IMG/VR virus record: IMGVR_UViG_3300048438_000153
Location: 1-64,000 of that record
DNA: 64,000 nucleotides
Direction: 5' to 3' (one strand)
Both the position numbers and the translations under genes were made by a program. The notes under the pieces were generated by a model. That model was not told the origin of the DNA and made no database searches. It saw nothing but the letters and a program-made list of their open reading frames with translations. Positions 21,986 to 57,820 of this stretch are shown in pieces. Numbering within the stretch: the first letter of the stretch is position 1; each line of letters begins with the position of its first letter.

Positions 21986-23284
21986 ATGAGAAAGACAGCG
22001 TATGAATATGGGTTGATGACCCTCGAAGAATTCTTAGATCACAGAAATCCAGGCGGTAAGACACATGAGAGTGGGTCTTATTCTTTCTCTGTAGACTCGA
22101 TGAATCAAGACTACTCAATCGTCGGGTACAGGATGGTTGAAGAGAGAAAGAGCGAGTACACCGTCTATGGTAAGAGTGACAAGTCGGCTTTCTTCTTCTG
22201 TAAAAACTACAAAATCAAAGCAGTCATCGCTAAGGGCGTGATCTATTACACCTATACGAGAGAGAAGAATCATATTCTCAGCCGTCCCCTCACAAGAGGT
22301 GTGCATTATGGCTACATCTACCCTCGTGACATGGGCTTGAGAGAAAAGAAAGTAAAGTACCCTGAAGACTACATGGGATTAGTCTCGGACATCGTAGAGA
22401 TGAACACTAGAAGATACCCTCATCTCCTTGAGAGGTTTGAGAATGACGGCGAATGCTTCTCTGTTAGGAGTGAAGAACCGCTCGTAGGCAAGAATCAGGG
22501 AGTCTCTATCGGCATCTTTAATGAGTCAGGCTACAAGGTCGCTACAGCACAAGATGAATGGGGGGCAACCTTAATCGGTGTGGCTCGCGAATATCGAAGC
22601 CGAGGGTTCAGCAAAGTCGTCTCTCGTTATTGGCTTCAGTATAACCCTGACAAGAAGTCAGGGGGGATGACTCCCGCAGGGCATAACGCGGCGGTCAGCT
22701 TTTGGGCTGACACCGTGAGAAAGATGCACTCAGAGGGAGTGTACGAAGAGAGGATTCTTAGTGGGGAGATCACTCAGGATAGAGTAGATGAAATCCTTGA
22801 AGCTCTCCCTCCGAAAGAAGTCAGAAAGATCGAGCGAGAAAGAACGATAGAGCCCACAGGTGAACTCCTCATGTTAGAGGGAGACTTTTCTTTCGTCGTC
22901 TACGATAAGTCTTTCTTAGTCGAGCAAGACGATAGGTTCATCTATGGGTATGGACTCTTGAGAGACAGTAGCGACGTAGGTGATTTTTTCTTTCAGTTAG
23001 ACTATGACAGAAAGTACGATGATACGGTGACTCGTATCGCGCTTCAATTCGCTAAGAATCGAGACAATAACCCACTCTATGATGGTCAAGGTGATCACTA
23101 CAGTGACCTCCTTGAAGTAGAGGGCATCTCAGAGATCAGAAGAGAAGGCGAGTACCTCTACATAGAAAGAGATTTAGTAGACTACTCTCCGCTCGTATAT
23201 CGAGATAAGATTTACAGAGGTCGCATCGACAAGTACGATGAGATGAAGCTTAACCTAGAAGAAAGAGCAGTCGCCAAGTGGTGA
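21986..23284 (+). CDS. GNAT acetyltransferase-like domain protein with an MRKTA N-terminus
   Basis: ATLIGVAREYRSRGFSK (motif A-like VxxxYRxRG) and SGGMTPAG. Start refined to the ATG at 21986 (GAGG SD). Confidence 0.6.
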   Translation: MRKTAYEYGLMTLEEFLDHRNPGGKTHESGSYSFSVDSMNQDYSIVGYRMVEERKSEYTVYGKSDKSAFFFCKNYKIKAVIAKGVIYYTYTREKNHILSRPLTRGVHYGYIYPRDMGLREKKVKYPEDYMGLVSDIVEMNTRRYPHLLERFENDGECFSVRSEEPLVGKNQGVSIGIFNESGYKVATAQDEWGATLIGVAREYRSRGFSKVVSRYWLQYNPDKKSGGMTPAGHNAAVSFWADTVRKMHSEGVYEERILSGEITQDRVDEILEALPPKEVRKIERERTIEPTGELLMLEGDFSFVVYDKSFLVEQDDRFIYGYGLLRDSSDVGDFFFQLDYDRKYDDTVTRIALQFAKNRDNNPLYDGQGDHYSDLLEVEGISEIRREGEYLYIERDLVDYSPLVYRDKIYRGRIDKYDEMKLNLEERAVAKW

Positions 23285-23303
23285 CTGTAAAAAGGAAACT
23301 CTT

Positions 23304-23525
23304 ATGCTAAAGCAAGATGACATTAGGATGCTCTCGGTGATTGGCGAGATGCCTGAACTCACAATCACGGAAGTGAAGAGAGAGTGGAGAGCTCGCTCGG
23401 GTCGAACTGACGCGGAGGCAGTTCTCAACAACCTCAATGCGAGAGGTCTTATTCTTATCGAAAGAGAGCTAGACGCAATCTTGATCTCTTCTAAGGGCGC
23501 GACCTATATCAAGAGGGGCTCTTAA
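23304..23525 (+). CDS. Small winged-helix-like protein
   Basis: 73 aa, AAGGA SD, LNNLNARGLILIER...ISSKG wing pattern. Confidence 0.6.
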   Translation: MLKQDDIRMLSVIGEMPELTITEVKREWRARSGRTDAEAVLNNLNARGLILIERELDAILISSKGATYIKRGS

Positions 23526-23794
23526 AGCTCAGCGAGGTCGAGAAACTCTTTCGACACAAATATGGGCGTGTGATCTCCGTAATACGCGCCCTGTACGTTA
23601 TACTCGAACCACTCAACCGCCTTGAGGTGAGCCTCTTCTTCTGAAGTCTCCTCATCTGAGAACTCTTCTTTCCAATGTGATATGAGCGCGTCTTGGTCAT
23701 AAGCGAGCACTGCGTTGTGATTAACGCGGGCGATTCCTATGATCATCGGGTCAAAGGCTTCTCTCGGCTCTAGAAACACTAGATTATCTTCCAT
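23522..23794 (-). CDS. Conserved phage protein of unknown function
   Basis: FDPMIIGI...LAYDQD...EEEA...EWFEYNVQGAYYGDHTPIFV matches a recalled widespread phage hypothetical pattern; GAGG SD. Confidence 0.7.
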   Translation of the reverse strand: MEDNLVFLEPREAFDPMIIGIARVNHNAVLAYDQDALISHWKEEFSDEETSEEEAHLKAVEWFEYNVQGAYYGDHTPIFVSKEFLDLAEL

Positions 23795-23881
23795 AACTCA
23801 GACCTCTTTACTATATGATGTATAGTGGGTGAGCGCGGTGCTTACCCTTACTAATCTTAGTACCGATTGAGGAGCATGGAA

Positions 23882-24184
23882 ATGGGAAAGACTCTTTGGG
23901 GGTTCGACAAGGAATGTCTAGCTATGGGTCGCTTACACAACTACCTGTCAAACGTCGATGGTATCGACGCTGAGAAAGTAGGTCGCGTGATGGCTTGGGC
24001 TCGCGAGGTGTTCGATAAGGATCAGCTTTACACGAAAGAAATAAAGCTGACTATCGAAACACTCTTAACATCAGGTTCAGATGAGGACAAAGAGTTCGCT
24101 CAGTATGCTAAAGACGCAGTTGAGAAAGACAACTTCGGCATCTTGAGAATGCCCCGAGATTACCGTATGAGGTATCGACGCTGA
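23882..24184 (+). CDS. Hypothetical protein
   Basis: GAGGAG SD 7 nt upstream of the ATG at 23882. Confidence 0.65.
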   Translation: MGKTLWGFDKECLAMGRLHNYLSNVDGIDAEKVGRVMAWAREVFDKDQLYTKEIKLTIETLLTSGSDEDKEFAQYAKDAVEKDNFGILRMPRDYRMRYRR

Positions 24185-24189
24185 TTACC

Positions 24190-24236
24190 TTGAGGTATTG
24201 GTGAGGTATCAGGATTGGGTGACTAAGGGTAATCAT
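24190..24236 (+). repeat. Dispersed intergenic repeat, copy F (opposite orientation, still on the coding strand)
   Basis: TTGAGGTATTGGTGAGGTATCAGGATTGGGTGACTAAGGGTAATCA lies between a stop at 24184 and the AGGAG SD of the next gene. Confidence 0.95.
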
Positions 24237-24256
24237 CATACTCTTAGGAGAAAATC

Positions 24257-24859
24257 ATGGGCGCAAAGAGATACTACTACGATAAACTAAGTCACTGCAA
24301 AGATTGGATTATTTGGACAGACCCCTTCACATATCGCCTCATTAGGCTAATGAGTGGGGAGATGCCTTGTGGCATACAGACCTCATGCGGAAGTCGCACT
24401 TACATCTTCAATGGGGAACATTCGTTCACAATGACTAACTCGGCGTATGGGATGTATAACTGTTCAGAGTCTTACTCTGAAAAGAAGATGTACGAGATGC
24501 TGACCTCTTGGTGTCGTAAGGAATGTCACATAAGGGATGGCTTAGACGAAAAGATCAAGTGGTGTCTCCAAGCGCCTGATGACCTGTATGACAAGCTCAT
24601 GCGTTTTCCGAGAGACTACACTCAATGCGAGCTGAGAACCGCTTGTCTTAACAATGATCGACATCATGAGGTTGGAGTAGCCAAGTTTTGGGGGGCAGAC
24701 CAACAATCAGTTGAGGTCAATGGTAACCTTCTTTACTTAAGCCTAAAAGGTTATCGGGAGAACACTAGAAAAACCTTAGAAAACGTCTACTTGTCTAAGA
24801 CAAGAGGATCTATGTATCAGACTTTTAGATACTCCGCTCATAAGATCACTAGGCTTTAG
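24257..24859 (+). CDS. Hypothetical protein
   Basis: 200 aa, AGGAG SD, preceded by repeat copy F. Confidence 0.7.
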   Translation: MGAKRYYYDKLSHCKDWIIWTDPFTYRLIRLMSGEMPCGIQTSCGSRTYIFNGEHSFTMTNSAYGMYNCSESYSEKKMYEMLTSWCRKECHIRDGLDEKIKWCLQAPDDLYDKLMRFPRDYTQCELRTACLNNDRHHEVGVAKFWGADQQSVEVNGNLLYLSLKGYRENTRKTLENVYLSKTRGSMYQTFRYSAHKITRL

Positions 24860-24934
24860 ATGTCTTCAAGATTGACTAAGGTTGTTTCCATCACTCAAGG
24901 CACTCTTAATCGCTTTCATCATTGACCCTGACTC

Positions 24935-25198
24935 TCAGGCTTCCAACAACCTTTTCTTGACGTAGTTCTGAAGCTTCTTACGGCTAGCACCCTCGATCTT
25001 GAGGTACTCAGCGATATGATTTCTTAACTCTCTGTCCCTATTGATTATGTGTTGTAAGTCAACAGAGTTCTTGAATGATTCGTCTAGTTGGACAAAGAGA
25101 GTCTCAAGAACCTTCGTCTCTTTATTAGGATCTTCAAGTTCAAGACGGGCGATTCTCATTTCAAGATCTTGGATGATTTCTGAAGCTGTTCTTCTCAT
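24935..25198 (-). CDS. Leader-tag family protein (MRRTASEIIQDLEMRIARLE)
   Basis: 87 aa, AAGGA SD, shared N-terminal motif. Confidence 0.7.
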   Translation of the reverse strand: MRRTASEIIQDLEMRIARLELEDPNKETKVLETLFVQLDESFKNSVDLQHIINRDRELRNHIAEYLKIEGASRKKLQNYVKKRLLEA

Positions 25199-25214
25199 GA
25201 CTGATTCCTTTATT

Positions 25215-25553
25215 TTAAGAGTACTTCTGAATATCCGTATTAAGGATATCTTTCATGGCGTCGAAAGAAACAGGACCCCACCCAACAGCACCATCAGGTG
25301 TTAGCGCCAAGAGTCCATTTCTCATGTGTATCTCATAAGAGAGTACGTTTCCATTAGCTAGATAGATAGAGACACTATTTCGACCAGAACTCTGAAGCTC
25401 TTTCTTTACGCTCTCAACTCCCCTTTGACGCCCAAAAAGCAGTGCGAGTTTGTAGATATATTCGAGGTCAACGTACTTCACAGAAGCCTTTCTTTCGAGA
25501 CGAGTGATGCGCCTCTCAAGCTCATTGATTACTTCTGAAGCTGTTTTTCTCAT
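25215..25553 (-). CDS. Leader-tag family protein (MRKTASEVINELERRITRLERKAS)
   Basis: Start refined to the ATG at 25553 (GGAG SD); shared N-terminal motif. Confidence 0.7.
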   Translation of the reverse strand: MRKTASEVINELERRITRLERKASVKYVDLEYIYKLALLFGRQRGVESVKKELQSSGRNSVSIYLANGNVLSYEIHMRNGLLALTPDGAVGWGPVSFDAMKDILNTDIQKYS

Positions 25554-25688
25554 AGTCTTTCTCCATTCATGGGTGGCTGTACACATTCAGGCTTAATAAA
25601 CTAACTACCAAAGTGTAAAGAGACAAAAAATATGAGGAAGCTCGTAGGGAAAAGCTAAAAAATCTTATTCGGCCTGTGCGGATTACGG

Positions 25689-25743
25689 TATAATGTAACA
25701 TGGCGCTGAGAGGACTTCGATCTCAGCCCTCTGATCTTTGACA
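25689..25743 (+). promoter_or_regulatory. Putative -10 box (TATAAT) plus a boxB-like hairpin and boxA-like antitermination element leading the tRNA cluster
   Basis: TATAAT at 25689-25694; hairpin GCTGAGA/TCTCAGC at 25705-25727; TGATCTTTGACA at 25732-25743 matches E. coli rrn boxA TGCTCTTTAACA at 10/12 positions. No clear -35 box. Confidence 0.5.
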
Positions 25744-25763
25744 TTTCGCATAAGTCTTACTCC

Positions 25764-25838
25764 ACACCTAAAGCTCAACGGAAAGAGCGGTCAGTGGGCT
25801 TCCTCTGACTACTACAGGTTCGATTCCTGTTAGGTGTG
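25764..25838 (+). ncRNA. tRNA-like RNA with a 10-nt anticodon loop (pseudo-tRNA or tRNA mimic)
   Basis: Perfect acceptor ACACCTA/TAGGTGT, D-stem GCTC/GAGC, anticodon stem GTCAG/CTGAC and T-arm ACAGG-TTCGATT-CCTGT, but the loop is TGGGCTTCCT. Confidence 0.8.
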
Positions 25839-25924
25839 CTAGACTACCTCCTTACTTTCTTACAACATCGTAGTTTGAGAGTAAGGTTTAGCAACTTCGG
25901 GGGGGGGTGCTGTAGTCTTTTTAA

Positions 25925-25997
25925 GCACTCATAGCTCAGTCGGAAGAGCACCACTTTCCTAAAGTGGGGGTCACAGGTTCGAGCCCTGTTGAGTGTA
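25925..25997 (+). tRNA. trnR: tRNA-Arg(CCU), reads AGG; CCA not encoded
   Basis: Full cloverleaf: GCACTCA/TGAGTGT, GCTC/GAGC, CCACT-TTCCTAA-AGTGG, ACAGG-TTCGAGC-CCTGT. Confidence 0.95.
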
Positions 25998-26046
25998 TTA
26001 GACCATATCTACTTTCTTTTATTACTTCCTTAAATAAAAGAAAATC

Positions 26047-26181
26047 GTGTAGGTGCGATTTAGCTTTAAAGCAAGCACAAGGACAGTAAACTCACAAAAG
26101 CCCTTAGTCGTGAGGAACTGATATGGAACAAGGTAGGTCAAACTCTTAGACCTAAGAAGCTAAGAAACTTCTCCACTACAC
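26047..26181 (+). ncRNA. Candidate structured non-coding RNA (multi-hairpin, possible kissing loop)
   Basis: Closing stem GTGTAG/CTACAC encloses hairpins GTGC/GCAC, AAGG/CCTT, AGT/ACT, AGGTC/GACCT and GAAG/CTTC; loop CTCAC is complementary to loop GTGAG. Confidence 0.45.
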
Positions 26182-26214
26182 TTAAGAGTACAATATAAAA
26201 ATAGGAGTATAGTC

Positions 26215-26292
26215 ATGGGAAACCCTAACTATCCATCTTCGACACCTAACCCAAGCGGTGGTGGTCGAGGTAACGCGCCAAAAGGTAAATAA
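26215..26292 (+). CDS. 25-aa Gly/Pro/Asn-rich peptide MGNPNYPSSTPNPSGGGRGNAPKGK (not in the ORF track)
   Basis: AGGAG SD 7 nt upstream of ATG; TAA stop at 26290-26292. Confidence 0.6.
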   Translation: MGNPNYPSSTPNPSGGGRGNAPKGK

Positions 26293-26375
26293 GGTATAGA
26301 TAATCACGTAGCACTTAAAGTGCTTCTTCCACCCACTGTCGTTCCTAGTGGGTTGTGGTAAAAAAGGAACATTAA

Positions 26376-26448
26376 GCACCAATAGCTCAGTCGGAAGAGC
26401 AGGGGCCTTCTAAGCCCAAGGTCGTAGGTTCGAGCCCTACTTGGTGCG
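26376..26448 (+). tRNA. trnR: tRNA-Arg(UCU), reads AGA; CCA not encoded
   Basis: Cloverleaf: GCACCAA/TTGGTGC, GCTC/GAGC, GGGGC-CTTCTAA-GCCCA, GTAGG-TTCGAGC-CCTAC. Confidence 0.95.
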
Positions 26449-26485
26449 TTATCTAACCTTATTCTTTCTTAATAGGATAAAGCCC

Positions 26486-26578
26486 TTGCCCTCAGAACAG
26501 ATATTGCCCGACTATTCAGTGTTCATCTATTGTTTTTTGATGGGGGTGACTCTCTTCTATTTATTTAAGAAAGAATAG
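26486..26578 (+). CDS. Putative 30-aa single-pass membrane peptide (not in the ORF track)
   Basis: TTG start after AGGA; MPSEQILPDYSVFIYCFLMGVTLFYLFKKE has a hydrophobic core and a basic tail. Confidence 0.4.
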   Translation: MPSEQILPDYSVFIYCFLMGVTLFYLFKKE

Positions 26579-26623
26579 GTTCTTATCAAGTACATAAATA
26601 AGAATGAAAAAAAGGGTCCTGTA

Positions 26624-26950
26624 ATGAAGATCAGTCAAGAGACACTCCATATCACTGAACAAGCAATCTCAACCTCAAGAGATCATCTCGTTTACCTACA
26701 TTCCTGTGGCTTAGGGGATTACCCTACAATTGAAGACATTCTGAACGGCGCGAAGATCGTGGCAACGTATCTTTCTCAGGGCAGAGAAATGAGCCCCGAC
26801 ATCAAAACCTATGCACTCGATTTTGCGTTCTCATATGAGTATGGGAGAGCGGAAGAGGAGTGTACAACTGATCTTTCTTTATATAATATCTTAGATATCG
26901 CCCAAAAGATCGAAAATGAGTTTCCCTCGATCTGTGATAAGGACTCTTAA
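26624..26950 (+). CDS. Hypothetical protein
   Basis: 108-aa ORF with AAGGG SD. Confidence 0.6.
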   Translation: MKISQETLHITEQAISTSRDHLVYLHSCGLGDYPTIEDILNGAKIVATYLSQGREMSPDIKTYALDFAFSYEYGRAEEECTTDLSLYNILDIAQKIENEFPSICDKDS

Positions 26951-27026
26951 CAGAGATCGAAATCGCGCTGATATCCTCTGACAGCCCATCCCTACCCACT
27001 TTACATTAAGAAAGGACTTATGTGAA

Positions 27027-27167
27027 ATGTACGCAGAGCGAACAATCTACTGCTTAAAGTGTAAACGCGAGACGTGGGAGGGGTCAAAATGCCCTACCAC
27101 TAACCGTAAAGAGAATTGCTCAGACAGAGAGTCATCTAAGAAAGAAATCAACCCAAAATGGGGCTGA
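27027..27167 (+). CDS. 46-aa Cys-containing (Zn-ribbon-like) peptide (not in the ORF track)
   Basis: AAAGGA SD; MYAERTIYCLKCKRETWEGSKCPTTNRKENCSDRESSKKEINPKWG. Confidence 0.5.
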   Translation: MYAERTIYCLKCKRETWEGSKCPTTNRKENCSDRESSKKEINPKWG

Positions 27168-27258
27168 GATTGAGGAGGGGGTCAGAGGCGTTCTTATTCG
27201 GTAGACTTTATATGTTTTCTCACAAATGATCTCTTTAACAGCTAAACGGAGAAAAACC

Positions 27259-27843
27259 ATGAGAAGATCTGCATCAGAAGTCCTTCATAATCTTGAGAAC
27301 AGGATTGCTCGTCTTGAGAAACAGTCAACTCATTATGACGGCGATCTGTACTGTCCCGATTGCTACCACACGCCACTTGAAGCTTTAGGTGGGGGTTATT
27401 ATTTTTGTGAGAAATGTGGCCATCAGCCCCACGTTAGTGAACTTGATACATCGGGGAAAAAAGCGTCTACTATCAGGCCCTCTTTTGTTTCAAATCGAGA
27501 GTCTGTTTTAAGATTCTTTGAGGATAAGATCACGCCTATCATCGCGGGCATGGGTCTTGGGGAAAGCTTGAATCGTAACCTTGTTTCCATTAGAGTTACT
27601 TCTTCTGAAGATCGGTTTAACTTTTTGGTGTCCTTTAACCATCAAGAGTTCTCTTTCTCACACGAGTTTCCTGAGCAGATCGCGTTCAGTTATCTGTTCG
27701 TGTCGGACTCTGACGGAAGAGTAGTATCTTCCACTCGAAAATCTGGAAAGGCGATTGATCTTAATGAATTTATGAGGCATTGGGACTTATATGACTCTAG
27801 AAGAAAAGGGGATCATGTTAAGGTTAGTATTAACCTTAGTTAA
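27259..27843 (+). CDS. Leader-tag family protein with a Zn ribbon (CPDC...CEKC) and a second domain
   Basis: MRRSASEVLHNLENRIARLEKQS leader. Start refined to 27259 (GGAG SD). Confidence 0.75.
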   Translation: MRRSASEVLHNLENRIARLEKQSTHYDGDLYCPDCYHTPLEALGGGYYFCEKCGHQPHVSELDTSGKKASTIRPSFVSNRESVLRFFEDKITPIIAGMGLGESLNRNLVSIRVTSSEDRFNFLVSFNHQEFSFSHEFPEQIAFSYLFVSDSDGRVVSSTRKSGKAIDLNEFMRHWDLYDSRRKGDHVKVSINLS

Positions 27844-28003
27844 GTCAGCTTTTAAATAAATACGCTCTAAAGTCCTTTCTTTGCGTATTCTCTTTTGAGC
27901 TTTCTTGTTAGGTTGGACATAGTAAGTCCCATCCCTTAAAAAAACCTCATGTTTTTGGTGTTCTTTGCTTCACTGAGAGGTATTCTTACACACCTAAATC
28001 TAT

Positions 28004-28186
28004 GTGGAAAAGAGGTTTGCTGTGTGGTGTATCGAGGTAATCAAAAAGATGAATGAGTCTCCCTCACTTCCTAGAGGTCATAAAACTACTAAGAGAGATA
28101 AAGAGAGAGATCTCAGAGAGCAGATTGAGAAGACAAAAGCTCAGTTGGAGTGCCTCAAAGAGTCTTTAGCCGAGCTCGAAAAGTAA
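28004..28186 (+). CDS. Small coiled-coil hypothetical protein
   Basis: 60 aa, GTG start; tail overlaps the opposite-strand ORF 28141-28278. Confidence 0.4.
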   Translation: MEKRFAVWCIEVIKKMNESPSLPRGHKTTKRDKERDLREQIEKTKAQLECLKESLAELEK

Positions 28187-28278
28187 ACTCTTTTCTCTTC
28201 TACTTTCTTAGGCTCTGCCTGAGCAATACCAAAGAGCGCGAGCAGAGAGAGGACGCAGGCACACAGCTTGTAAAGCAT
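28141..28278 (-). CDS. Putative 45-aa secreted peptide with a signal sequence (not in the ORF track)
   Basis: GAGGG SD; MLYKLCACVLSLLALFGIAQA|EPKKVEEKRVYF... has an AxA signal-peptidase-I site. Confidence 0.4.
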   Translation of the reverse strand: MLYKLCACVLSLLALFGIAQAEPKKVEEKRVYFSSSAKDSLRHSN

Positions 28279-28463
28279 CTCAGCCCTCACCGACTGCTAA
28301 GAGTAAGGACGGCTAAAAGCACTCTGTTTCTCATGGCGGTTTCTTTCTTAACGTGGTGGGTAGGCAGATACGCCAAAAGGTCATCTCCCCGATAAATAAA
28401 CTATGGGAGGGCTCGCATAGGTTCTGATATGTGGTTGGGAGACTCGAATGAAAGGGTATAAGA

Positions 28464-28991
28464 ATGAGAGTCAAACACTATACAGGAATCGGCTCGCGTG
28501 AGACACCACAGAAAGTCCTACTTCAGATGGAGAAGATCGGCTCTTTCTTCGCTGAGAAAGGCTATGTGCTTCGCTCAGGAGGGGCAAAGGGCGCAGATAC
28601 TTACTTTGAGCGTGGGTGTAATAACGTCAGGGGGTTCAAGCAGATATGGCGACCCTCTGAGAGTCACTTCCCTCTACAGGAGTGGGCTATTGAGAAAGCC
28701 TCTGACGTCTGTTGGGAGTACCCTCTCGAAAAGATGAAGGCTTACACCATCGGCTTAATCACTCGAAATATGTATCAAATCTACGGTGATTCTGAATCCG
28801 TAGAGGGTATCATCCCCGTAGACTTCGTGGTCTATTGGAGTAACGGAAATCCTTTGGAAGAAGGTCGGGATTCAGGTGGGACGCGCTATGCCGTGAGAGC
28901 AGCGAGCGCCATCGGTATTCCGACCTACAACCTGAGAACACAGAAAGAAGAGTTCGCAGATTTTCTGAGGGCTCTGAAGGAAGAGAACTGA
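28464..28991 (+). CDS. SLOG-superfamily (DprA/Smf N-terminal-like) protein
   Basis: YTGIGSRETP...VLRSGGAKGAD...SGGTRYAVRAA...IPTYNL is the typical phage DprA-like SLOG pattern. Confidence 0.8.
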   Translation: MRVKHYTGIGSRETPQKVLLQMEKIGSFFAEKGYVLRSGGAKGADTYFERGCNNVRGFKQIWRPSESHFPLQEWAIEKASDVCWEYPLEKMKAYTIGLITRNMYQIYGDSESVEGIIPVDFVVYWSNGNPLEEGRDSGGTRYAVRAASAIGIPTYNLRTQKEEFADFLRALKEEN

Positions 28992-28993
28992 AC

Positions 28994-29221
28994 ATGGAGA
29001 AACTAGGTGCAGTCGCCTTTATTGGACTCTTTATCTTATTTTTTTACCTAGACCTCACAAGGATTGTGGAAGTCCACATCTGTGAATCTCAAGGTGTAAC
29101 TCAGTACGTTAGCTTTAGCCCTCGACCTGATCTCTTAAGCGTGGGTGACTGTAGGGTCGTTGAGATGTCAAAATCATCCTACTATAATTTGAAAAGACTT
29201 ATGAAAGAAGGTCAAAGATGA
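28994..29221 (+). CDS. Small membrane-anchored protein
   Basis: N-terminal hydrophobic helix LGAVAFIGLFILFFYL. Confidence 0.6.
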   Translation: MEKLGAVAFIGLFILFFYLDLTRIVEVHICESQGVTQYVSFSPRPDLLSVGDCRVVEMSKSSYYNLKRLMKEGQR

Positions 29222-29433
29222 AGCATTTGAGAGTTGTGTTGAAGTGGGTAGAACCCACCGTAGACGGCCTGACTTACGAAGGTGAGACCCCTTACTCTGA
29301 GTTGCCTGAAAAGATCGAGATTCCTCTTGGCGAGGATCATGGTGAGATTGATGAGCACGACTTACTTGACCACATCTCAGACACCTATGGTTGGGTCATT
29401 AAGTTTTACGAAGTCCACGTTATCGAAGAGTGA
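29218..29433 (+). CDS. Small acidic hypothetical protein
   Basis: 71 aa with ATGA overlap. Confidence 0.65.
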   Translation: MKHLRVVLKWVEPTVDGLTYEGETPYSELPEKIEIPLGEDHGEIDEHDLLDHISDTYGWVIKFYEVHVIEE

Positions 29434-29439
29434 GTTAGA

Positions 29440-30243
29440 ATGGGCGCTCCTAAGTGGTCAGTTGAAGATGTGCTTACCATTTCTGTGATGGTGGACTTTC
29501 TCACTCTTAAAGAACTGAGCGAGAGAATGGGGCGCAGTGAAGGCGCGGTGAGGCGAAAGCTCCATTCTTTGGGTCTGAGGGTCAAGCACCATCAATCGAG
29601 AAAGAAGCCTCCTAGCTCGTGGTCTGAAGATGAGATCAAATATCTTAAGACAGCGGTAAAGAAGAAGACCATCCCTGAAATGGCTTCTCACCTCAAAAGG
29701 TCTGTCAGTTCGGTTAACTACAAGCTCCGTCACTTGGGGATTCCTGTGCGCTCGGTTAGAGGTTACAAGAGAACCAAGAAAAGAAAAGGAGAGTGGACTC
29801 GGAAAGAGACTTCTTTCTTAAGGGAAAATGTAGGTCTGATGACATCCCTAGAGATCTCGGAGCATATAAAGCGTACTCCCCTCTCAATCAAGTTGAAAGC
29901 CACTAAGATGAATCTTTCACTACAGATCAATCCTTGGACTGAAAGTGACTTTGAAACCTTAACTCAACGCATTCAAGAGGGAGTGTCTTTCACCGCGCTC
30001 TCTCAAGAGCTAGGGAGAAGCCCTGAAGCTGTAAGAGCGAAAGCGAGATGTTTGATGATTGCGCCGAGCAATCGGTGGACAGATGAAGAGAATTCCACCT
30101 TACTCTCTCTTAGAGATGATCAAGGGCTTTCTTTCCGAGAAATCTCAGCTCGCCTACAGAAGTCAGTTTTCTCTGTGAGAAAGAAGTACAACCGATTAGT
30201 CAAAGCCTCTCATACAGGAGGCAATCTTAGCGATCAAGGGTAG
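29440..30243 (+). CDS. Tandem Myb/SANT-like HTH repeat DNA-binding protein
   Basis: Five ~50-aa repeats starting WSVED, WSEDE, WTRKE, WTESD and WTDEE, each with an L.RS..(A/S)V-type recognition helix. Confidence 0.8.
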   Translation: MGAPKWSVEDVLTISVMVDFLTLKELSERMGRSEGAVRRKLHSLGLRVKHHQSRKKPPSSWSEDEIKYLKTAVKKKTIPEMASHLKRSVSSVNYKLRHLGIPVRSVRGYKRTKKRKGEWTRKETSFLRENVGLMTSLEISEHIKRTPLSIKLKATKMNLSLQINPWTESDFETLTQRIQEGVSFTALSQELGRSPEAVRAKARCLMIAPSNRWTDEENSTLLSLRDDQGLSFREISARLQKSVFSVRKKYNRLVKASHTGGNLSDQG

Positions 30244-30344
30244 GTTAGGACATCTACCGCACCTATATTTTCAGGTTGTGGAAAGCGACGGACTCAATCG
30301 GTATAAATCCCCATCAGAAAAGTACCGATTGAAAGGCAGTAGAG

Positions 30345-31142
30345 ATGAATAAAAAGTCTGTCGCGAAAGCAAGAAACCTTAACAAGCAAAAGAAAGCCCT
30401 CCGCCGAAAGAGAAAGGCTAAGGCTCGTCTCAAGAAGAAAAGACTCCTCAAGAACATGGTGGGGAAGCCTCAGATTAACATTGAGAACTTCCTCTTCCGC
30501 TATGCTGTAGAGAATATGGCGAACGTCTCTTTCTCCTACTTGGAGAAAGGCACTAACTACTATCTCAGCAACGATGACGTTGATCTGACTCTAGAGCAGT
30601 TCTTAACGAATCGTAAAGCAGACACCTATTTCTCCTGTGGTGTTCGTGGCGCTTTCAAAGATGGGGATCTTCAAGTCTCAAAACCGCTCACATGGATACC
30701 TGAAGCGGAGCGACCCACAGTCAAAGATTACCTCGCTGAGCTGTGGAATCCTGAAGTCGAAGCTGATGGGGTCAAGCAAGTGAACTCGTTCACGTTCTTT
30801 CTCTATGACGACGATGACTTTGCAGAGGATGAATACGGCGATCATTTCTTAGTGTGTTGTGTCATGGTTTCGGGAGTCACAAAAGACCACATTGAGGGCT
30901 ATCTAGTGATGAGAAACGCATACGAGAAGGACGGCGCTCTCTGCCTTGAAGGGGAGAACCTATTCTTAGACCATGAAGATGTTCTTTCTGTGATCGTGCC
31001 TCCAATGATAAACCTCCCTGAGCCTCCTACAGAAGAGCCTGAGTCTCCTACAGAAGAGCCTGAGTCTCCTACAGAAGAGCCTGAGTCTCCTGTAGAGGAT
31101 GAACCTAATAGTTCAGAGAAAGAAGTTGAGGTCGATGGGTAA
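30345..31142 (+). CDS. Hypothetical protein with a Lys/Arg-rich N-terminus and Pro/Glu-rich repeats at the C-terminus
   Basis: 265-aa ORF. Confidence 0.7.
   Translation: MNKKSVAKARNLNKQKKALRRKRKAKARLKKKRLLKNMVGKPQINIENFLFRYAVENMANVSFSYLEKGTNYYLSNDDVDLTLEQFLTNRKADTYFSCGVRGAFKDGDLQVSKPLTWIPEAERPTVKDYLAELWNPEVEADGVKQVNSFTFFLYDDDDFAEDEYGDHFLVCCVMVSGVTKDHIEGYLVMRNAYEKDGALCLEGENLFLDHEDVLSVIVPPMINLPEPPTEEPESPTEEPESPTEEPESPVEDEPNSSEKEVEVDG
31024..31091 (+). repeat. 21-bp tandem repeat (3 copies plus a partial) encoding PTEEPES
   Basis: (ctcctacagaagagcctgagt)x3. Confidence 0.95.
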
Positions 31143-31509
31143 GTGCTTCGTTAAATGGGAACTGCAAGAGGACGTTACTTGGAAATGGAGGTGCTCTCGG
31201 TATTGGCTCAATCAAGGTAAGGCGTTCAGAGAATCTTCTGAAGTCTGCTATCACTACCAATGTAAAGGGCGCGCTGAGCGAGTCATACACCCTCTCATCG
31301 AGGGGGGACTTGAAGAAGTTCAAGACCCCCCTAAGACTACTCCTATATGTGCATGGTATCGGTGCGATCAGCCTGTCGCTCCCAACAAGTTAAGACATTG
31401 CTCAGAAGTCTGTCGAAAGAGACAGAACCGATGGGATTACAAACAGCGCAAGAAGAAAGAGCGTAAGGATGCCAAGAGACAAGAGAAAGATCACAATCTA
31501 TCTGACTGA
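31135..31509 (+). CDS. Cys-rich Zn-finger-like protein
   Basis: C...CYHYQC, CAWYRC and HCSEVCR followed by a basic tail. Start refined to 31135. Confidence 0.65.
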   Translation: MGKCFVKWELQEDVTWKWRCSRYWLNQGKAFRESSEVCYHYQCKGRAERVIHPLIEGGLEEVQDPPKTTPICAWYRCDQPVAPNKLRHCSEVCRKRQNRWDYKQRKKKERKDAKRQEKDHNLSD

Positions 31510-31657
31510 AGAAGTCAGACAAGAGATCGGGAAAGAAGCGGAGAGACTTGACCGCACTACGAGTTGGCTACTGAGGAAGGCTTGGCTCATCGCTCAAGAA
31601 GAGATTAAGTCTTATCCCTCAATCCCTACTTATGAGGACGATAGCGACCCCACCTGA
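31469..31657 (+). CDS. Ribbon-helix-helix protein resembling the myxobacterial MXAN_4361/4362 (TIGR04563) family
   Basis: DKRKITIYLTEEVRQEIGKEAERLDRTTSWLLRKAWLIAQEEIKSYP closely parallels the recalled family pattern DKRKQSLYF.E.ML.EI..EA.R.DRSLSW.VQ.AW.IAR..I..FP. Confidence 0.75.
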   Translation: MPRDKRKITIYLTEEVRQEIGKEAERLDRTTSWLLRKAWLIAQEEIKSYPSIPTYEDDSDPT

Positions 31658-31904
31658 CTCGTCGGCATAGGTGTCTCTGACTCATCAGTCTCACCTCTTG
31701 ACTAACCACCGCTCTTAACGAAGCCCTGTCTCCCCCCTCTTCTACATACACTGAGGGTAGTGACAGGGCTTTTATTATGTGCGACATCATCATAGTAACA
31801 GAGCCTTTATCTTGATCTTTCTCTAAGTGGTCTTGATCAGAGAAGTCCTCTGTTTGAAAGTAGATAGAGAGGGCTTCCCTTATTTGCGCTCGATTAATAC
31901 TCAC
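31626..31904 (-). CDS. Hypothetical protein
   Basis: 92-aa ORF filling the gap between plus-strand genes. Confidence 0.35.
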   Translation of the reverse strand: MSINRAQIREALSIYFQTEDFSDQDHLEKDQDKGSVTMMMSHIIKALSLPSVYVEEGGDRASLRAVVSQEVRLMSQRHLCRRVRWGRYRPHK

Positions 31905-31945
31905 TTTATATCCCGAATGTCTTAACTGAAGAAAGAAGGTGAGTC

Positions 31946-32419
31946 ATGGATAGACTGTATGATTTGATGGTCAGGGTAGCTCGCCTTGAACGCACATCGA
32001 AAGTAAAAAGTACGAAAGCTGAAGATGTGTTTTTTGACAACCCTCTCCATAAGTCTGTGAAGCAACTCGCTGAGTCCAAGGCTCTTTCTAATGACCCCGA
32101 CACAGCTAAGCACAGCATAGGGATGTCCGACAACCCTGACAGGACTAAAGAAGAAGCTAAGAAAGAGGCTCTCGTAGCTCCACCCCCTCCTTCAGAAATC
32201 AAAGAAAAGCCTGGCGGAAAAGAGTTTTCCACTCTTAACCAACTCGTCATCGACACAGAAGAGAAAGTAAAGGGTGTTCCAAAGGGCTTCGGGGAAGCGC
32301 CGAAAGTAGACCCTGAAGAGCCTCTTCCTGAAGCATCTAAAGACATGAAGCAGATCAAGAAAGAGGTCGTTAAGAAAGTAATGAGGAGAAAAGGCTATGT
32401 CATCACTAACTCTAAATGA
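31946..32419 (+). CDS. Charged protein with an RVARLE leader variant; possible head/scaffold-associated protein
   Basis: MDRLYDLMVRVARLERTS; K/E/P-rich; AAGGTGAG SD. Confidence 0.7.
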   Translation: MDRLYDLMVRVARLERTSKVKSTKAEDVFFDNPLHKSVKQLAESKALSNDPDTAKHSIGMSDNPDRTKEEAKKEALVAPPPPSEIKEKPGGKEFSTLNQLVIDTEEKVKGVPKGFGEAPKVDPEEPLPEASKDMKQIKKEVVKKVMRRKGYVITNSK

Positions 32420-32963
32420 GACACCCGAGAACTTAGATATCATCCGTAATGGTGATCGCTTCGCCGCTACTATTGGGCCTCTCCTCAGAAGGTCGAAATG
32501 GAAAGGTGGTACTTGGGTTAAGTATGTCGAAGATGAAATCGACACTACGAGCTTCACGGTAGAGAAATCAGACGGCATTTATACCTGTGGTTTCGTGATC
32601 TACGGGAGTGAAGATTATGACAACGCGAGAGTGTCTAACTACCGCAACTTCACTAGCTATCAGAATACCTCTTCAATCGCACCCGCTCTAGGTACTGCGA
32701 CGCTTACGCTAGTGGCAGGTGGAGGGCGCTTTCTTTTCAAACAGTTCGAGTCTTTCAGACTAGACGCTCAGGGAAACAGGACTCTCCCCGCCAACTATCA
32801 GCTCAATCAAGAGCTTAAAGTCTCAGAAAACGGACTGCTCTGTAATGATGATGACGCTGACCTTATAGCTAAGACAGGAGGGGCTAAAGCCCTGATCGTA
32901 GGGATTTGCTGTCTTTTACCCACCACCCAAGTCCCGAAACTCGGGCTCGATTACAAGTTCTAG
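32397..32963 (+). CDS. Probable virion (head decoration/cement-like) protein
   Basis: 188-aa beta-rich ORF (WKGGTWVKY; NFTSYQ; LKVSENGLLCND). Function is inferred from composition only. Confidence 0.5.
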   Translation: MSSLTLNETPENLDIIRNGDRFAATIGPLLRRSKWKGGTWVKYVEDEIDTTSFTVEKSDGIYTCGFVIYGSEDYDNARVSNYRNFTSYQNTSSIAPALGTATLTLVAGGGRFLFKQFESFRLDAQGNRTLPANYQLNQELKVSENGLLCNDDDADLIAKTGGAKALIVGICCLLPTTQVPKLGLDYKF

Positions 32964-32971
32964 GAGATACT

Positions 32972-33460
32972 ATGAGTACTAAGAAAAGAATGATTATAAG
33001 AGTCGCTTCTGCTCACATGGAGAAGCAAGCTTTATTCGGGTTATTTGACAAGATGTTCAAGGACAGCCCTGACAGTTCAAAACATCATAAGACAAGCTAC
33101 AACAGCTATACTCTTATGATGTTTGGTAGCCCTCAGAGGGGCGTTCAGGCTGAATGGCTTAAAAACAGTCTCGGCTTCGAGCGCGGTCAAGATTCCATTA
33201 CATTGAGCCTCAAAGGGAAAGAGATCCTCGTCACTGTCGGGACAAAAGTTCTTCAGAAAAACAGGGACTACAGAGACAACATCACAGACCTCTTCACTAC
33301 GATTACGGCGTCGGGCGTTGATTCTAACATCTCAGACAGAGAGCTTGAGAGCTTCTTGAGAGATCTTCTTAGGAAAGAGCGTGTTCCTAAAGCGTACATC
33401 AAGACTCAGGATGAGGTTGTACGTCAGCTAGACATCAGTACTACGAGCGTTTACAGGTAA
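32972..33460 (+). CDS. Protein with an IRVAS...EKQA leader variant
   Basis: Start refined to the ATG at 32972 (AGGAG SD overlapping the upstream TAG). Confidence 0.7.
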   Translation: MSTKKRMIIRVASAHMEKQALFGLFDKMFKDSPDSSKHHKTSYNSYTLMMFGSPQRGVQAEWLKNSLGFERGQDSITLSLKGKEILVTVGTKVLQKNRDYRDNITDLFTTITASGVDSNISDRELESFLRDLLRKERVPKAYIKTQDEVVRQLDISTTSVYR

Positions 33461-34945: not shown

Positions 34946-37900
34946 TTAGTTTTTAAAGTTGAAGATACTCTTATCAAGACTCAGCTTAGCTGGATCATTA
35001 TCTTCAGGAGGCTGACTGTTGCCCTTCATCAAAGGTAGACCCTTGACTCTGAAGCGGTCGGCACAAGCGAATCCTTCACCATATCCGCTAGGAGAGATTT
35101 CCCCACCTATCTTGAGGGGCAGAGGCGAGAGCCTGTCGTTCTTGCCCTTAAAGACAGCTTGCGTGGCGATTAAGAGCTGTATCTCATCACCATGTGATCG
35201 CACAGAAAGGTTCTGTGCGTTGAAAGCAGTCTCCTCGAAGTTCCTGACGAGCATCGCACGACAAGCGAGGGCTGATCCCTTTAGTACAGGATTTAGCTCT
35301 TCAGAGAAAGAGTCGTTGAGGAAAGTCAGAGGAGCGCCCTTCACGTCACCTGATCCGCCGTACACACTACCGCCACCTCTAAAGACCCTGTATTTCTTTG
35401 TGCCTCCCGCTAAGGGGAACGCGCCGTAAGAAAGAACGTCTCCGTCTCCCATGTGGAGAACCTCACCTGACCCACCCGTAATCTTAGTGTAAGGTCTACC
35501 CTTCTCATCAGCTCCTACAGACGAAGGCAAGGATGTCAGCTTACTTCCAAAGGTTTGGAGGCGAGCAGAGCCGTCTCTTAAGATGTCCTCACACATGAAA
35601 TCGTGATCACTTACGAGAATCCCTAAAGGGAGTCTAGAAGTGAGTCCAACAAGAGAAATGTCGATGTCTCTTGCCTCGAAATCAGACAGGAAAGAAATCG
35701 CATTGACAGGTTTAGTCTTACCTCCTGTCATGCTCACGGTGCTCAAGGTCGGGTTGTCATAGTTAGACCCTACTCGACCACCGCTGAACAGCTTCGTTTT
35801 GATGCCTGTGTCAGAGCGTGCTCCACCTGTAGAAGCAGAAAGTAATGATACACTAAGAGTTGTGTTGTTACCGTCTTCACCTAACGTGGGAGAGAAGAAG
35901 GTGAAAGAAACAGAGGTGTTTCTTTCTTCAGTCACAAAGTCAACGAGAGTGCCGTTAAAAGAAGCCACGATTTCCTGTACGAGATCACTGAAGCTCGCGG
36001 GCGGTGAATTGACGTCTACTTGGTAAGTAAAGATCCCCTGACCCCTTGAGTCATCAACCTCAATCATTAAGTAAGAATCCGAGCCATTACTGTTTGAGTA
36101 GAAGTCAAAGAAAAGGAAGAAGATCGTGACTGTCGCGCTCGCTCTCTCAGACCCATCTCCCAACACCTCTGTGAAAAGACCAATCTTAGTTTGAGGGAGA
36201 GCCTGAGTCGGACTCAGGGCCACGCGCTCTCCTGATGCGATAAGAGCAGAGTCAGAGATGTAGTTAGAGTAGCCCACGTCTTTTAGAGTATTGCGACGAA
36301 CAAGACCGCCCATAGCCCCTGTTCCCATCGTCGTGTAGAAATCCATAGAGGCAAGCACCTCCAAAGACCTCTTGTTAGCTACCTCAATCGCGCTCGTCCC
36401 ATCTGTCTCTTCCTGTCCTCTCGGAGTGTTAAGAAGATAAGTGTTTGAAGGAGGTATTAAACCATACCTATACGCCTGATCAGTATAGCTAGGGGACGCG
36501 CCTCCAATCGTTTGGAAAGGGTCGCCCTGATACACTGTTCGAGTACCCGCGATGTAGACCTCATCTGTGTGAGAAACAGGAGAGGGAAGACACATTCTTA
36601 TGTTAGTGAGCGCAGTCCCTCCCCCAACACCTACGAGGCTGTCAGAGGCATCGTACTTTCTAGCGAGAACAAAGTTGTTCTCATTGATGAAGCCTACACC
36701 GAAACCAAAGACTGTACACTCAACGACGTACTCAAAGTCTGAGAAAGAGTTGCCGTCTACATAAGTTGGGATCTTGGAGATGTCGAGAGCGTGCTCTGTC
36801 ACCACATAAGTGTGGGATTCCTCTTCACCCTCCACCGTGATCTCAGCTCCACCTCCTCTAAGAATATAGAGAGGGAAGAGATCACTGTCTTTCCTCAAGA
36901 GGTTAGTTGGAGGAAGACCCCCCGCGTTGCCTGTTGGCGTCTCTCTGTCCGTCTCATGTGAGCCGATGCTCGCGTTAGGAGCGAGCGCGTTGAAGTCCTG
37001 AGCCTCATAAATACCGTACAGGCGCACAATGCCAAAGAATGGAGGGAGCTTGATGCCGTTTAAGACATCTCCGAACTCGGATGAAGGCTTCCCTGTGAGG
37101 CTGATCTTCTTAGCTACGAAAGCGCCCTGATTAGCGAGGTTAGAGTTCGCCACCCATTGGCCGTAAGTGCTCCCCCCCACTCCTGTGGCGAAAACGAGAG
37201 GGTAAACACCTGATCCGTTGTACTGACCGCCAATCACTCTGAAAGAAGAAGAGGTGGTGTTTCTTTGATCTGAGAAAAGGTGGTTGTAGCCCTCCATGTA
37301 AGGGTCTACGTCACTCGTCTTCACATGGTAAGGGATGTCTTGCCTACCGAAAGTGGGCATGATCTCTTGAGGAACGGCGTAGACCTCAGTCCTTGCGTCG
37401 TTAAACAAGTTAAGAGCGCCGAACTTATCTGTGTTCCCATCTGCGTATTTCTCGTTTCCTAACACGCTCGAAGAAAGGGTGTGTCCTGAAAGTCTGATAC
37501 CCTGATCTGAGAAAGGTCTGAGAACAACCGTCTTAGACCCAACATCAATGAAAGCCTCGGATTCTTTCTTAATCTCGCTGTTAGAGATTTCTTCCCTGTC
37601 TTCAGGGTCGAGCTTACTCCAACTCTCAATGTGGTTATTCACAGGGAGATAGACTTCACCATTAGGGAGAGGCATTTCATTCACAGCGTCCACATCAAGA
37701 CGAGAAGGTGCGTTCCTGAGATAGTCAGAGGTGATGTTTCTTAAAGCGATGGTATGGATGTCATCAAGTACCCTCGCGCTCGCGCCCCTCGCGGGCGGAT
37801 ACTGCAAGGTTGTCGAGATGGCGATTGGCGCGCTTCTTTCTGCTACGAGAGGGAGGTTCGCGTGTGTAGCTCTGTCCGAATCTGAACAAGACGTAAACGC

Positions 37901-40300: not shown

Positions 40301-40314
40301 TTTCAATATTCTCC

Positions 40315-41034
40315 TTAAAATATAAGGGCATACGAGAGTATGTAGAGATCGTTAATGGAGCTTTCATTAAGGAAAGCGATCCGAACCTCTCCTGTCTTTT
40401 GCTCGAAAGAAAAAGGAGCGAGGCGTTCGATCTTCTCGTATGTATTTCCATCGTTCTCAGATATATAAACAGAATACTCGCTCTCAGAAGCCTCGACATA
40501 TCTCATCACGGTAGGCTCATTCTTATCTGCGTCTGCGTAATTGGTGAGATCTACAGGAGTGGTGTCATGCCTTACTCCCTTTCTCACGATGCGCCAATAC
40601 ATCAAGAAAGTCTCTCGACCTTCACCGTCACTCGTAAGAGCTGTCAGGTCGATATTCTGAGTAATGAGCAAACCGTTCCTACCCGCAGGAGTTTCCTTTG
40701 GAACACAAGCCACGTTGGGTGTCTCTCCTACCCTAAATCGACAAGGGATATGCCCCGTTTCTTTCGGAAAGAGAGCCGAACCATCAAACTCCGCAGAGGA
40801 GTCGAGGAGAGGCTTGTAAATCAGGTGGTCGTAGGAGGGGTAAGACTCCAAGAACTTACCCTCTATGCTAGAAATAAGAGTAGGGAGATCGAAAGGGTTA
40901 TTAGCCCCTAGCTCATTTCCTATCTCTATGCAGTCAGGAAAGTCGAGGATATACTTTCCGTTCATGTAGACATACTCGTCGAAAGACTTGATAGTCTGAA
41001 CGGGTAGGTCGTCTTTTCGGGTCATGATGATCAT
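40315..41034 (-). CDS. Probable virion structural protein
   Basis: TGATG overlap with the 4204-aa gene; C-terminal VYISENDGNTYE (Asp-box-like) segment. Confidence 0.65.
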   Translation of the reverse strand: MIIMTRKDDLPVQTIKSFDEYVYMNGKYILDFPDCIEIGNELGANNPFDLPTLISSIEGKFLESYPSYDHLIYKPLLDSSAEFDGSALFPKETGHIPCRFRVGETPNVACVPKETPAGRNGLLITQNIDLTALTSDGEGRETFLMYWRIVRKGVRHDTTPVDLTNYADADKNEPTVMRYVEASESEYSVYISENDGNTYEKIERLAPFSFEQKTGEVRIAFLNESSINDLYILSYALIF

Positions 41035-57818: not shown

Positions 57819-57820
57819 GA

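Follow-up and report, generated by a model that had tools for sequence, protein, structure and literature searches.

A conserved N-terminal leader on unrelated proteins of uncultured marine huge phages: a candidate propeptide with an indirect link to head maturation

Introduction

Why should genes lying apart on both strands of a phage genome begin with nearly the same peptide and then diverge completely? The question is raised by a 64,000-nucleotide stretch of DNA (hereafter the window), which is the first 64 kb of the 275,102-bp linear virus record IMGVR_UViG_3300048438_000153 of the IMG/VR database (genome G000). Three genes of the window share a start of about 22 residues, and the original prediction took this peptide for a modular address and cleavage tag that loads diverse effectors into the head for injection, with phage T4 and phiKZ-like phages as precedents. 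Here we describe the peptide as a leader of 23-24 residues carried by a large number of unrelated proteins, and we tentatively read it as a propeptide that can be detached from the N-terminus and is specific to one clade of uncultured huge marine phages.

G000 is about 88% complete and has a GC content of 47.5%; the phage to which it belongs is marine and uncultured, and turns up in more than 15 seawater metagenomes. It was compared with a complete relative of 376 kb (G001), a second relative of 227 kb (G002) and its nearest GenBank relative, LR745208.1 ('uncultured phage', 485 kb, unannotated). Most G000 proteins had no Pfam or PHROG match.

Results

A leader conserved at the peptide level

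The consensus of 233 leader sequences reads M R R [ST] A S E [IV] I R N L E x R [IV] A R L E [KR] Q [AS] [SGA]. It opens with Met-Arg-Arg-(Ser/Thr)-Ala-Ser-Glu, continues with hydrophobic residues at positions 8/9, 12, 16 and 19, corresponding to two heptads of an amphipathic helix, and closes with Arg-Leu-Glu-(Lys/Arg)-Gln-(Ala/Ser)-(Ser/Gly). Positions M1, A5, L12, R15, L19 and E20 are essentially invariant. The residues RR[ST]ASE, which lie outside the helix, are as conserved as the helix itself, and A-S-E is found at residues 5-7 in 97% of copies. A reading of the initial MRR as a Tat signal was rejected on the sequence alone, as no hydrophobic h-region follows it.

A hidden Markov model (HMM) of the leader was run against all six-frame segments of G000 and detected 11 copies, every one of them N-terminal, with E-values typically of 1e-13 to 1e-15 and a divergent copy at 136309 (2e-7). 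The three starts of the window from which the original prediction had been made are among them, each beginning at the first ATG behind a ribosome-binding site of the GGAG type. There were 31 copies in G001 and 12 in G002. In IMG/VR the leader was confirmed in 199 stretches, and when 1.84 billion cluster representatives were searched with a profile, it was placed in 1,135 clusters (E<=1e-3), nearly always at residues 1-25. LR745208.1 is without it (best E 0.55). Among 100 leader proteins scanned, no Pfam or PHROG family could be attributed to the leader residues, and a literature search found no paper describing the leader.

When leader codons for the same residue were compared within G000, 47% differed synonymously, and the 30 nucleotides upstream of the leader genes were only 34% identical. 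This synonymous divergence, together with the dissimilar upstream DNA, indicates that conservation acts on the peptide and not on the DNA. As to codon choice, about 90% of copies use AGA at codons 2-3, compared with 29-37% genome-wide, and codon 18 is nearly always CGN.

Unrelated cargoes and internal copies

The 107 cargo regions that follow the leader fell into 78 unrelated clusters. Within the window, proteins A, B and C (Table 1) showed no mutual BLASTP similarity after residue 23. The modular character of the tag proposed by the original prediction is therefore well founded. The identity of the cargoes was searched for with Pfam (100 proteins scanned), PHROGs and ESM Atlas, which gave one WGR domain only; the annotations contained no hint of effector function, and a PHROGs scan of the neighbours of leader genes returned almost no matches.

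Internal copies were present in 16 proteins. Nearly all of these comprise only the second half of the leader, R[IV]ARLE[KR]Q[AS], placed between two cargo domains (for example P0129, P0139, P0141 and P0167). In P0131 the whole unit is tandemly duplicated, with boundaries at the two sites, and one G001 gene is a fusion in which a full internal leader is followed by NRTAS and then by the WGR-domain cargo. Judged from these arrangements, the internal copies have the layout that a cleavable linker would have.

Protein C of the window is organised in a comparable order (leader, zinc ribbon, C-terminal domain), and the second GKKAS noted in it by the original prediction is present as KKAS at residues 67-70; the protein matched no Pfam family and gave no ESM Atlas lead. 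The genes encoding proteins A and B are probably co-transcribed, since the start of A lies only 16 nucleotides past the stop of B. The three partial leaders that had been proposed fared less uniformly. The protein starting at 31946 carries the second half of the leader (RVARLERTS, HMM E 0.013) and lacks the first half; its G001 orthologue (46% identity) is located behind the promoter-like motif described below. The protein starting at 32972 resembles the G001 protein at 91902 (RRVASAHM) and does not belong to the leader family, its RVASAHM being an instance of a separate recurrent motif, RVAS-x-[YH]-[LM]. The protein starting at 21986 resembles only residues 1-7 of the leader (MRKTAYE), has no helix, was not detected by the HMM and was not counted as a member; nor was a GNAT or any other Pfam domain found in it, so that its first description as a GNAT protein is not confirmed.

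The second motif, in its wider form R-V-A-[SD]-x-[YH]-[LMI], recurs N-terminally, C-terminally and internally in many proteins, and RVAS was counted 33 times in G000 and G001 together against 3.8 expected.

A tetrapeptide shared by the leader and head proteins

The leader opens with R-[ST]-A-S and commonly closes with [KR]-x-[AS]-S. Using within-protein shuffles to obtain the expectation, we found 147 [KR]xAS tetrapeptides in the G000 proteome against 55 expected (2.7-fold, z 11.4). The permuted controls [KR]xSA, [KR]xAT and [KR]xGS were flat, while AS[EQD] gave a z of 4.3, to be compared with 11.4 for [KR]xAS. The excess was also observed in G001 (145 against 58, z 13), it persisted (z 10.5) when the first 30 residues of every protein were removed, and the enrichment of individual proteins was shared by G000 and G001 orthologues (Spearman 0.37, p 4e-6, 144 pairs).

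In G000, the scaffold-like protein contains 9 sites (0.7 expected), an 866-residue head-module protein encoded two genes upstream of the terminase contains 10 (0.95 expected) and the head maturation protease contains 5 (0.4 expected), a concentration of about 10-fold; the G001 orthologues of these three proteins are enriched as well. The major capsid protein, the portal and a 202-residue protein had no [KR]xAS site in any genome compared. In LR745208.1 the genome-wide excess is marginal (z 2.5); the corresponding counts there are 6 against 0.6 for the scaffold-like protein, 6 against 0.6 for the 866-residue-like protein and 3 against 0.5 for the protease. Because this leaderless phage keeps the excess in its head proteins, the tetrapeptide can be regarded as an old property of the head-maturation machinery, one that the leader-bearing clade has extended to many accessory proteins.

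The position of the sites was then analysed in 247 leader proteins. Their density was 120 per 1,000 positions at residues 1-8, where nearly all of these proteins have a first site, and 20-45 at residues 18-30. It dropped to near zero at residues 30-60 and was about background further on.

The head maturation protease

All 34 members of the protease family matched phrog_18299, 'head maturation protease', with E-values down to 3e-17. Comparison of the protease profile with PDB sequences gave noise only, and Pfam gave nothing. Among 116 homologues, R-x-A-S is found at residue 25 in 103, the rest having R-x-A-A, and 58 have a site just past the catalytic domain. The mean number of sites per homologue was 0.24 in the catalytic region and 1.97 in the C-terminal tail. 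Such a layout is what would be expected of a self-trimming enzyme. Given the distribution of the sites in the head proteins and in the protease family, we infer that the head maturation protease probably recognises [KR]-x-A-S. We also weighed [KR]xxS as a kinase target and set this aside: no Pkinase domain was found, and the invariant alanine at -1 fits a protease better.

The phage itself is neither phiKZ-like nor T4-like, since searches of G000 for PF12699 (phiKZ_IP) gave no match at E<=1 and searches for PF03420 (Peptidase_S77, the gp21 family) gave no match. Its major capsid protein is a small protein of HK97 fold. The orthologue of the large terminase in G001 is longer (1361 residues).

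A promoter-like motif common to leader and capsid genes

The motif TAGTTTNTTTATA was found at a fixed 46-67 nucleotides upstream of 18 of the 31 leader genes of G001, a genome in which 50 of its 59 matches lie within 150 nucleotides upstream of a gene. There is no match in LR745208.1. In both G000 and G001 a motif of this class precedes the operon of the 202/208-residue protein and the major capsid protein; it is also found before other head-module genes and before several giant, presumably structural, genes, and was not seen directly upstream of replication, RNR (ribonucleotide reductase) or ThyX genes. As they use the same promoter-like motif, leader and capsid genes are apparently regulated together. 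The only metatranscriptome match was one contig of 258 nucleotides, which does not overlap any leader gene.

In a subset of the G001 leader genes about 65 nucleotides upstream are conserved along with the leader. A block GGTGATCTCTTTAACCCTTAACC...AATGGAGAA lies there between the promoter-like motif and the start codon, and CCTTAACC was found upstream of 12 of 42 leader genes compared with 3 of 676 others. This block could be a regulatory RNA, an operator or the trace of a recent duplication.

Actin-like and ClpP genes close to leader genes

Two further genes were considered as partners of the leader. The actin-like (Volactin) gene adjoins leader genes in both G000 and G001 and is 92% identical between them (76% for the large terminase). 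It was rejected as a partner, being also present in the leaderless LR745208.1 (62% identity). The ClpP gene of G000 closes a replication module that includes an SNF2 helicase, DnaB and a primase zinc ribbon, and a leader gene follows it immediately. ClpP occurs in G000 and G001 and not in LR745208.1. This candidate was also set aside, in view of its replication-module setting, of the lack of an unfoldase gene beside it, and of 39 other genes having the same pattern of presence and absence.

Coordinates and other features

The coordinates of the features are collected in Table 1.

Table 1. Features of the window and of the rest of genome G000 (positions in nucleotides; aa, residues).
Feature	Position	Strand	Remarks
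MRKTAYE protein, 432 aa	21986..23284	+	Like leader residues 1-7 only
Leader protein A, 87 aa	24935..25198	-	HMM E 6e-14; leader codons 1-23 at 25130-25198; RTAS at residues 3-6; RIARLE core at 25139-25156
Leader protein B, 112 aa	25215..25553	-	HMM E 5e-13; leader at 25485-25553; KTAS at residues 3-6; junction site RKAS at residues 21-24 (25482-25493)
Promoter-like motif TAGTTAGTTTATT	25595..25607	-	2 mismatches to TAGTTTNTTTATA; 54 nucleotides upstream of protein B start
tRNA-Arg genes	25925-25997, 26376-26448	+	Between the leader genes of the window
Leader protein C, 194 aa	27259..27843	+	HMM E 5e-14; leader at 27259-27327, then CxxC...CxxC zinc ribbon, then C-terminal domain
Second [KR]xAS site of protein C, KKAS	27457..27468	+	Between zinc ribbon and C-terminal domain
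Protein with weak SLOG / DprA-like matches, 175 aa	28464-28991	+	E ~2e-3
Half-leader protein	31946..32419	+	RVARLERTS at N-terminus; core at 31973-31990
Second-motif-class protein	32972..33460	+	RVASAHM at 32999-33016; not the 23-residue leader
HEIGH-motif protein, 340 aa	33467-34489	+	Weak Peptidase_Mx1 match
Giant open reading frames (2884, 1786, 4204, 1367, 1077 aa)	9780-18434, 34946-40306, 41034-53648, 53715-61054	+, -, -, -	Presumably structural
Leader starts, G000	27259, 25553, 25198, 83233, 91386, 99959	+, -, -, -, +, -	Leader HMM
Further leader starts, G000	133097, 136309, 141638, 142304, 215940	-, -, -, -, -	Leader HMM
Second-motif sites, G000	73882, 77121, 79713, 113113, 169737, 200591, 212865		Genome coordinates
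ClpP homologue	90653-91336	+	E 1e-29
Auxiliary metabolic genes	104537-106957, 168636-169655, 204647-207724, 214044-215021		Genome coordinates
Actin-like (Volactin) protein	136369-137364	-	PF25216 by ESM Atlas
Major capsid protein, 292 aa	182994-183872	-	HK97 fold; PF25209; JGI name HK97-family MCP
Scaffold-like protein, 681 aa	184640-186685	-	Acidic, repeat-rich
Head maturation protease	186675-188093	-	472 aa; phrog_18299, E 1.6e-15
Portal-like protein	191567-193240	-	
Large terminase with intein	193473-196607	-	LAGLIDADG homing endonuclease; PF14890, PF14528

The two tRNA-Arg genes of the window have the anticodons CCU and UCU, reading AGG and AGA. In an independent seawater metagenome (run X4), contigs break and diverge at the first of them (window 25960-26000), which suggests a strain-level rearrangement or a variable insertion point. 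BLASTP matched all of the giant open reading frames except the one of 4204 residues to G001, with 30-36% identity in the aligned portion. The protein with the HEIGH motif has no G001 orthologue, and its match to Peptidase_Mx1, a zinc metallopeptidase family, was just under the cut-off (E 1.6e-5); the protein with SLOG / DprA-like matches is 55% identical to a G001 protein. The auxiliary metabolic genes of G000 (ThyX, RNR small subunit, glutamine synthetase, nucleotide-cyclase-like, thymidylate-synthase-like and pyridoxal-phosphate-enzyme-like) are present in G001 and absent from LR745208.1.

Discussion

What the leader may do

The link of the leader to proteolytic head maturation is supported indirectly. 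It is suggested by four observations: the ends of the tag match the [KR]xAS tetrapeptide of the scaffold-like protein and of the protease, where it flanks the catalytic domain; half-leaders lie between the domains of fused proteins; the promoter-like motif of leader genes recurs before the capsid operon; and the genome encodes a head maturation protease. As for the address and cleavage tag of the original prediction, the modular tag thus stands, its connection with head proteolysis is indicated in this indirect manner, and the phage is not a phiKZ-like one.

The best explanation, which we consider quite possible, is that the leader is a capsid-targeting propeptide, analogous to that of T4, which would be removed by the head protease. 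Cargo proteins carrying it would be made together with the capsid proteins. As the head assembles, the leader helix would dock them on the scaffolding core or on the inner prohead, whereupon the head maturation protease would cut the [KR]-x-A-S type sites bracketing the helix, destroying the tag. Cutting at the same type of site, it would also take apart the scaffold-like protein and process itself. The cut cargo would be freed inside the capsid and could enter the host with the DNA. A broader proposal is that the leader and the [KR]-x-A-S code form a general sorting system, sending up to about 7% of the phage genes into the maturing capsid and releasing their products there; this we hold to be possible, but doubtful.

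Several observations weigh against a capsid-targeting propeptide. The junction site at residues 18-30 is found in its strict form [KR]xAS in 58 of the 247 leaders and in a relaxed form in 134. The position of [KR]xAS sites is conserved between G000 and G001 orthologues in 25% of cases, and control tetrapeptides were no lower. The AlphaFold2 model of the protease has a mean predicted local distance difference test score (pLDDT) of 49, too poor to place its fold or specificity. LR745208.1 shares the head module (89% identity for the major capsid protein, 65% for the portal, 42% for the protease) and has no leader, which indicates that the head machinery can do without it. The leader was found in no GenBank phage and in no cultured relative. 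The timing of the promoter class is read from its use in the capsid operon only. Finally, the leader genes are dispersed, and some lie among replication and nucleotide-metabolism genes.

This last point would be accommodated if the leader were processed without being packaged. The propeptide would hold small proteins inactive or oligomerised until it is cleaved in the cytoplasm by the head protease or by ClpP, and the cargoes would act in the infected cell instead of being carried in the capsid. Candidate sites on either side of the helix and at the junctions of fused domains would fit this explanation equally, leader genes are found in non-structural settings, beside RNR, ClpP and replication genes, and ClpP provides the leader-bearing genomes G000 and G001 with a second protease that LR745208.1 does not have. 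However, the prohead proteases of characterised phages are active inside proheads (PMC9026906), the motif is concentrated in the scaffold and protease proteins of the head module, and the replication-module surroundings of ClpP showed no adjacent unfoldase. We therefore regard processing of this kind as rather unlikely.

The leader might also be a docking or oligomerisation tag that is never cut, the helix recruiting proteins to each other or to a hub, which could be the actin-like filament or a replication or assembly site; its resemblance to [KR]xAS would then have another meaning. The heptad-spaced hydrophobic residues and the invariance of L12, R15, L19 and E20 suit such a helix, as does the well conserved actin-like gene adjoining leader genes in both genomes. 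Yet the leaderless LR745208.1 has an actin-like gene as well, RR[ST]ASE is equally conserved outside the helix, and an internal half-motif ending in [KR]Q[AS]S between two domains suits a linker site better than a docking helix. On balance an uncleaved tag seems unlikely.

We find it very unlikely that the leader is an N-terminal degron serving timed degradation by the phage ClpP with a host unfoldase. ClpP is kept in the leader-bearing genomes, absent from LR745208.1 and encoded directly upstream of a G000 leader gene, but 39 other genes have the identical pattern, the genes seen to adjoin it include no ClpX- or ClpA-like one, and a degron leaves both the half-motif between domains and the concentration of sites in the scaffold unexplained. 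Moreover, the promoter-like motif in common with capsid genes does not point to early proteins in need of removal. It is highly improbable that the peptide has no function of its own and that a cassette of promoter, untranslated region and leader spreads by duplication or recombination, the N-terminus hitch-hiking or serving translation initiation only: the conserved upstream block of the G001 subset with its CCTTAACC element and the preference for AGA at codons 2-3 would agree with this, but the G000 copies keep the peptide over divergent codons and upstream DNA, L12, R15 and E20 are invariant over the 1,135 clusters, and half-leaders persist in fused proteins far from start codons.

Significance

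If the leader is a capsid-targeting propeptide, it would provide a sequence rule for finding the packaged, and probably injected, proteins of widespread uncultured ocean phages, and would list injected proteins from more than 1,000 families without database annotation. It would also supply a candidate cleavage code for a large family of head maturation proteases, uncharacterised so far, that counts over 1,300 members, show that the capsid-address strategy of T4 arose independently and on a much larger scale, and lend itself as a short tag by which foreign proteins could be loaded into HK97-type capsids. Were packaging to be disproved, the conservation of one peptide on 1,135 unrelated clusters would still be a strong signal of a shared cellular fate.

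Comparison with known systems

The leader system is undescribed in the libraries and literature searched; the kind of element that it would represent, a capsid-targeting or processing propeptide, is already known. In herpesviruses, assemblin and the scaffold are processed at Ala|Ser, and in the staphylococcal phage 80alpha the N-termini of capsid and scaffold proteins are trimmed by the host protease Prp. These systems resemble the one described here in having small-residue sites in the scaffold and flanking the catalytic domain of the protease, a likeness that we offer as a lead only. A role of Prp itself was rejected, as PF04327 is absent from G000. A different parallel is the cargo-loading peptide of encapsulins, a short terminal peptide that sends unrelated cargo inside a shell of HK97 fold. 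The leader is likewise a short terminal peptide on unrelated cargo in a phage with an HK97-fold shell; it differs in being N-terminal, helical and, from its sequence, apparently cleavable, and the shell is that of a tailed phage, with portal, terminase, scaffold and protease.

In phage T4 the capsid-targeting sequence (CTS) of the internal proteins IPI, IPII and IPIII is a short N-terminal peptide that directs these proteins to the core of the prohead and is cleaved off by the prohead protease; the genes for internal proteins are scattered and hypervariable between relatives (PMC9026906). Both the CTS and the leader are short N-terminal peptides on otherwise unrelated and poorly conserved small proteins, with the same architecture and the same association with a site, here a candidate one, of the protease. 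However, the leader has 23-24 residues and a two-heptad helix, compared with 10-19 residues in T4; the protease belongs to phrog_18299 and not to the gp21 family; the candidate site is [KR]-x-A-S, whereas that of T4, (L/I)-x-Glu, is not the enriched motif; and the scale is far larger, with up to 31 genes per genome. At the sequence level the leader presumably bears no resemblance to the CTS.

In phiKZ-like phages and SPN3US, many head and ejection proteins are processed by a protease that cleaves after A/S/G-x-E, and short propeptides, one of 20 and one of 24 residues, are known from two SPN3US proteins (PMC10052503). These are also giant phages with short propeptides, and the A-S-E at residues 5-7 of the leader formally fits A-x-E. 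In contrast to the leader, their propeptides are not described as one shared sequence; in addition, G000 has a small HK97-type capsid protein and no phiKZ_IP, and its [KR]xAS is enriched whatever residue follows. The leader differs from the T4 and SPN3US systems in protease family, in candidate site and in tag sequence, and is therefore a member of neither.

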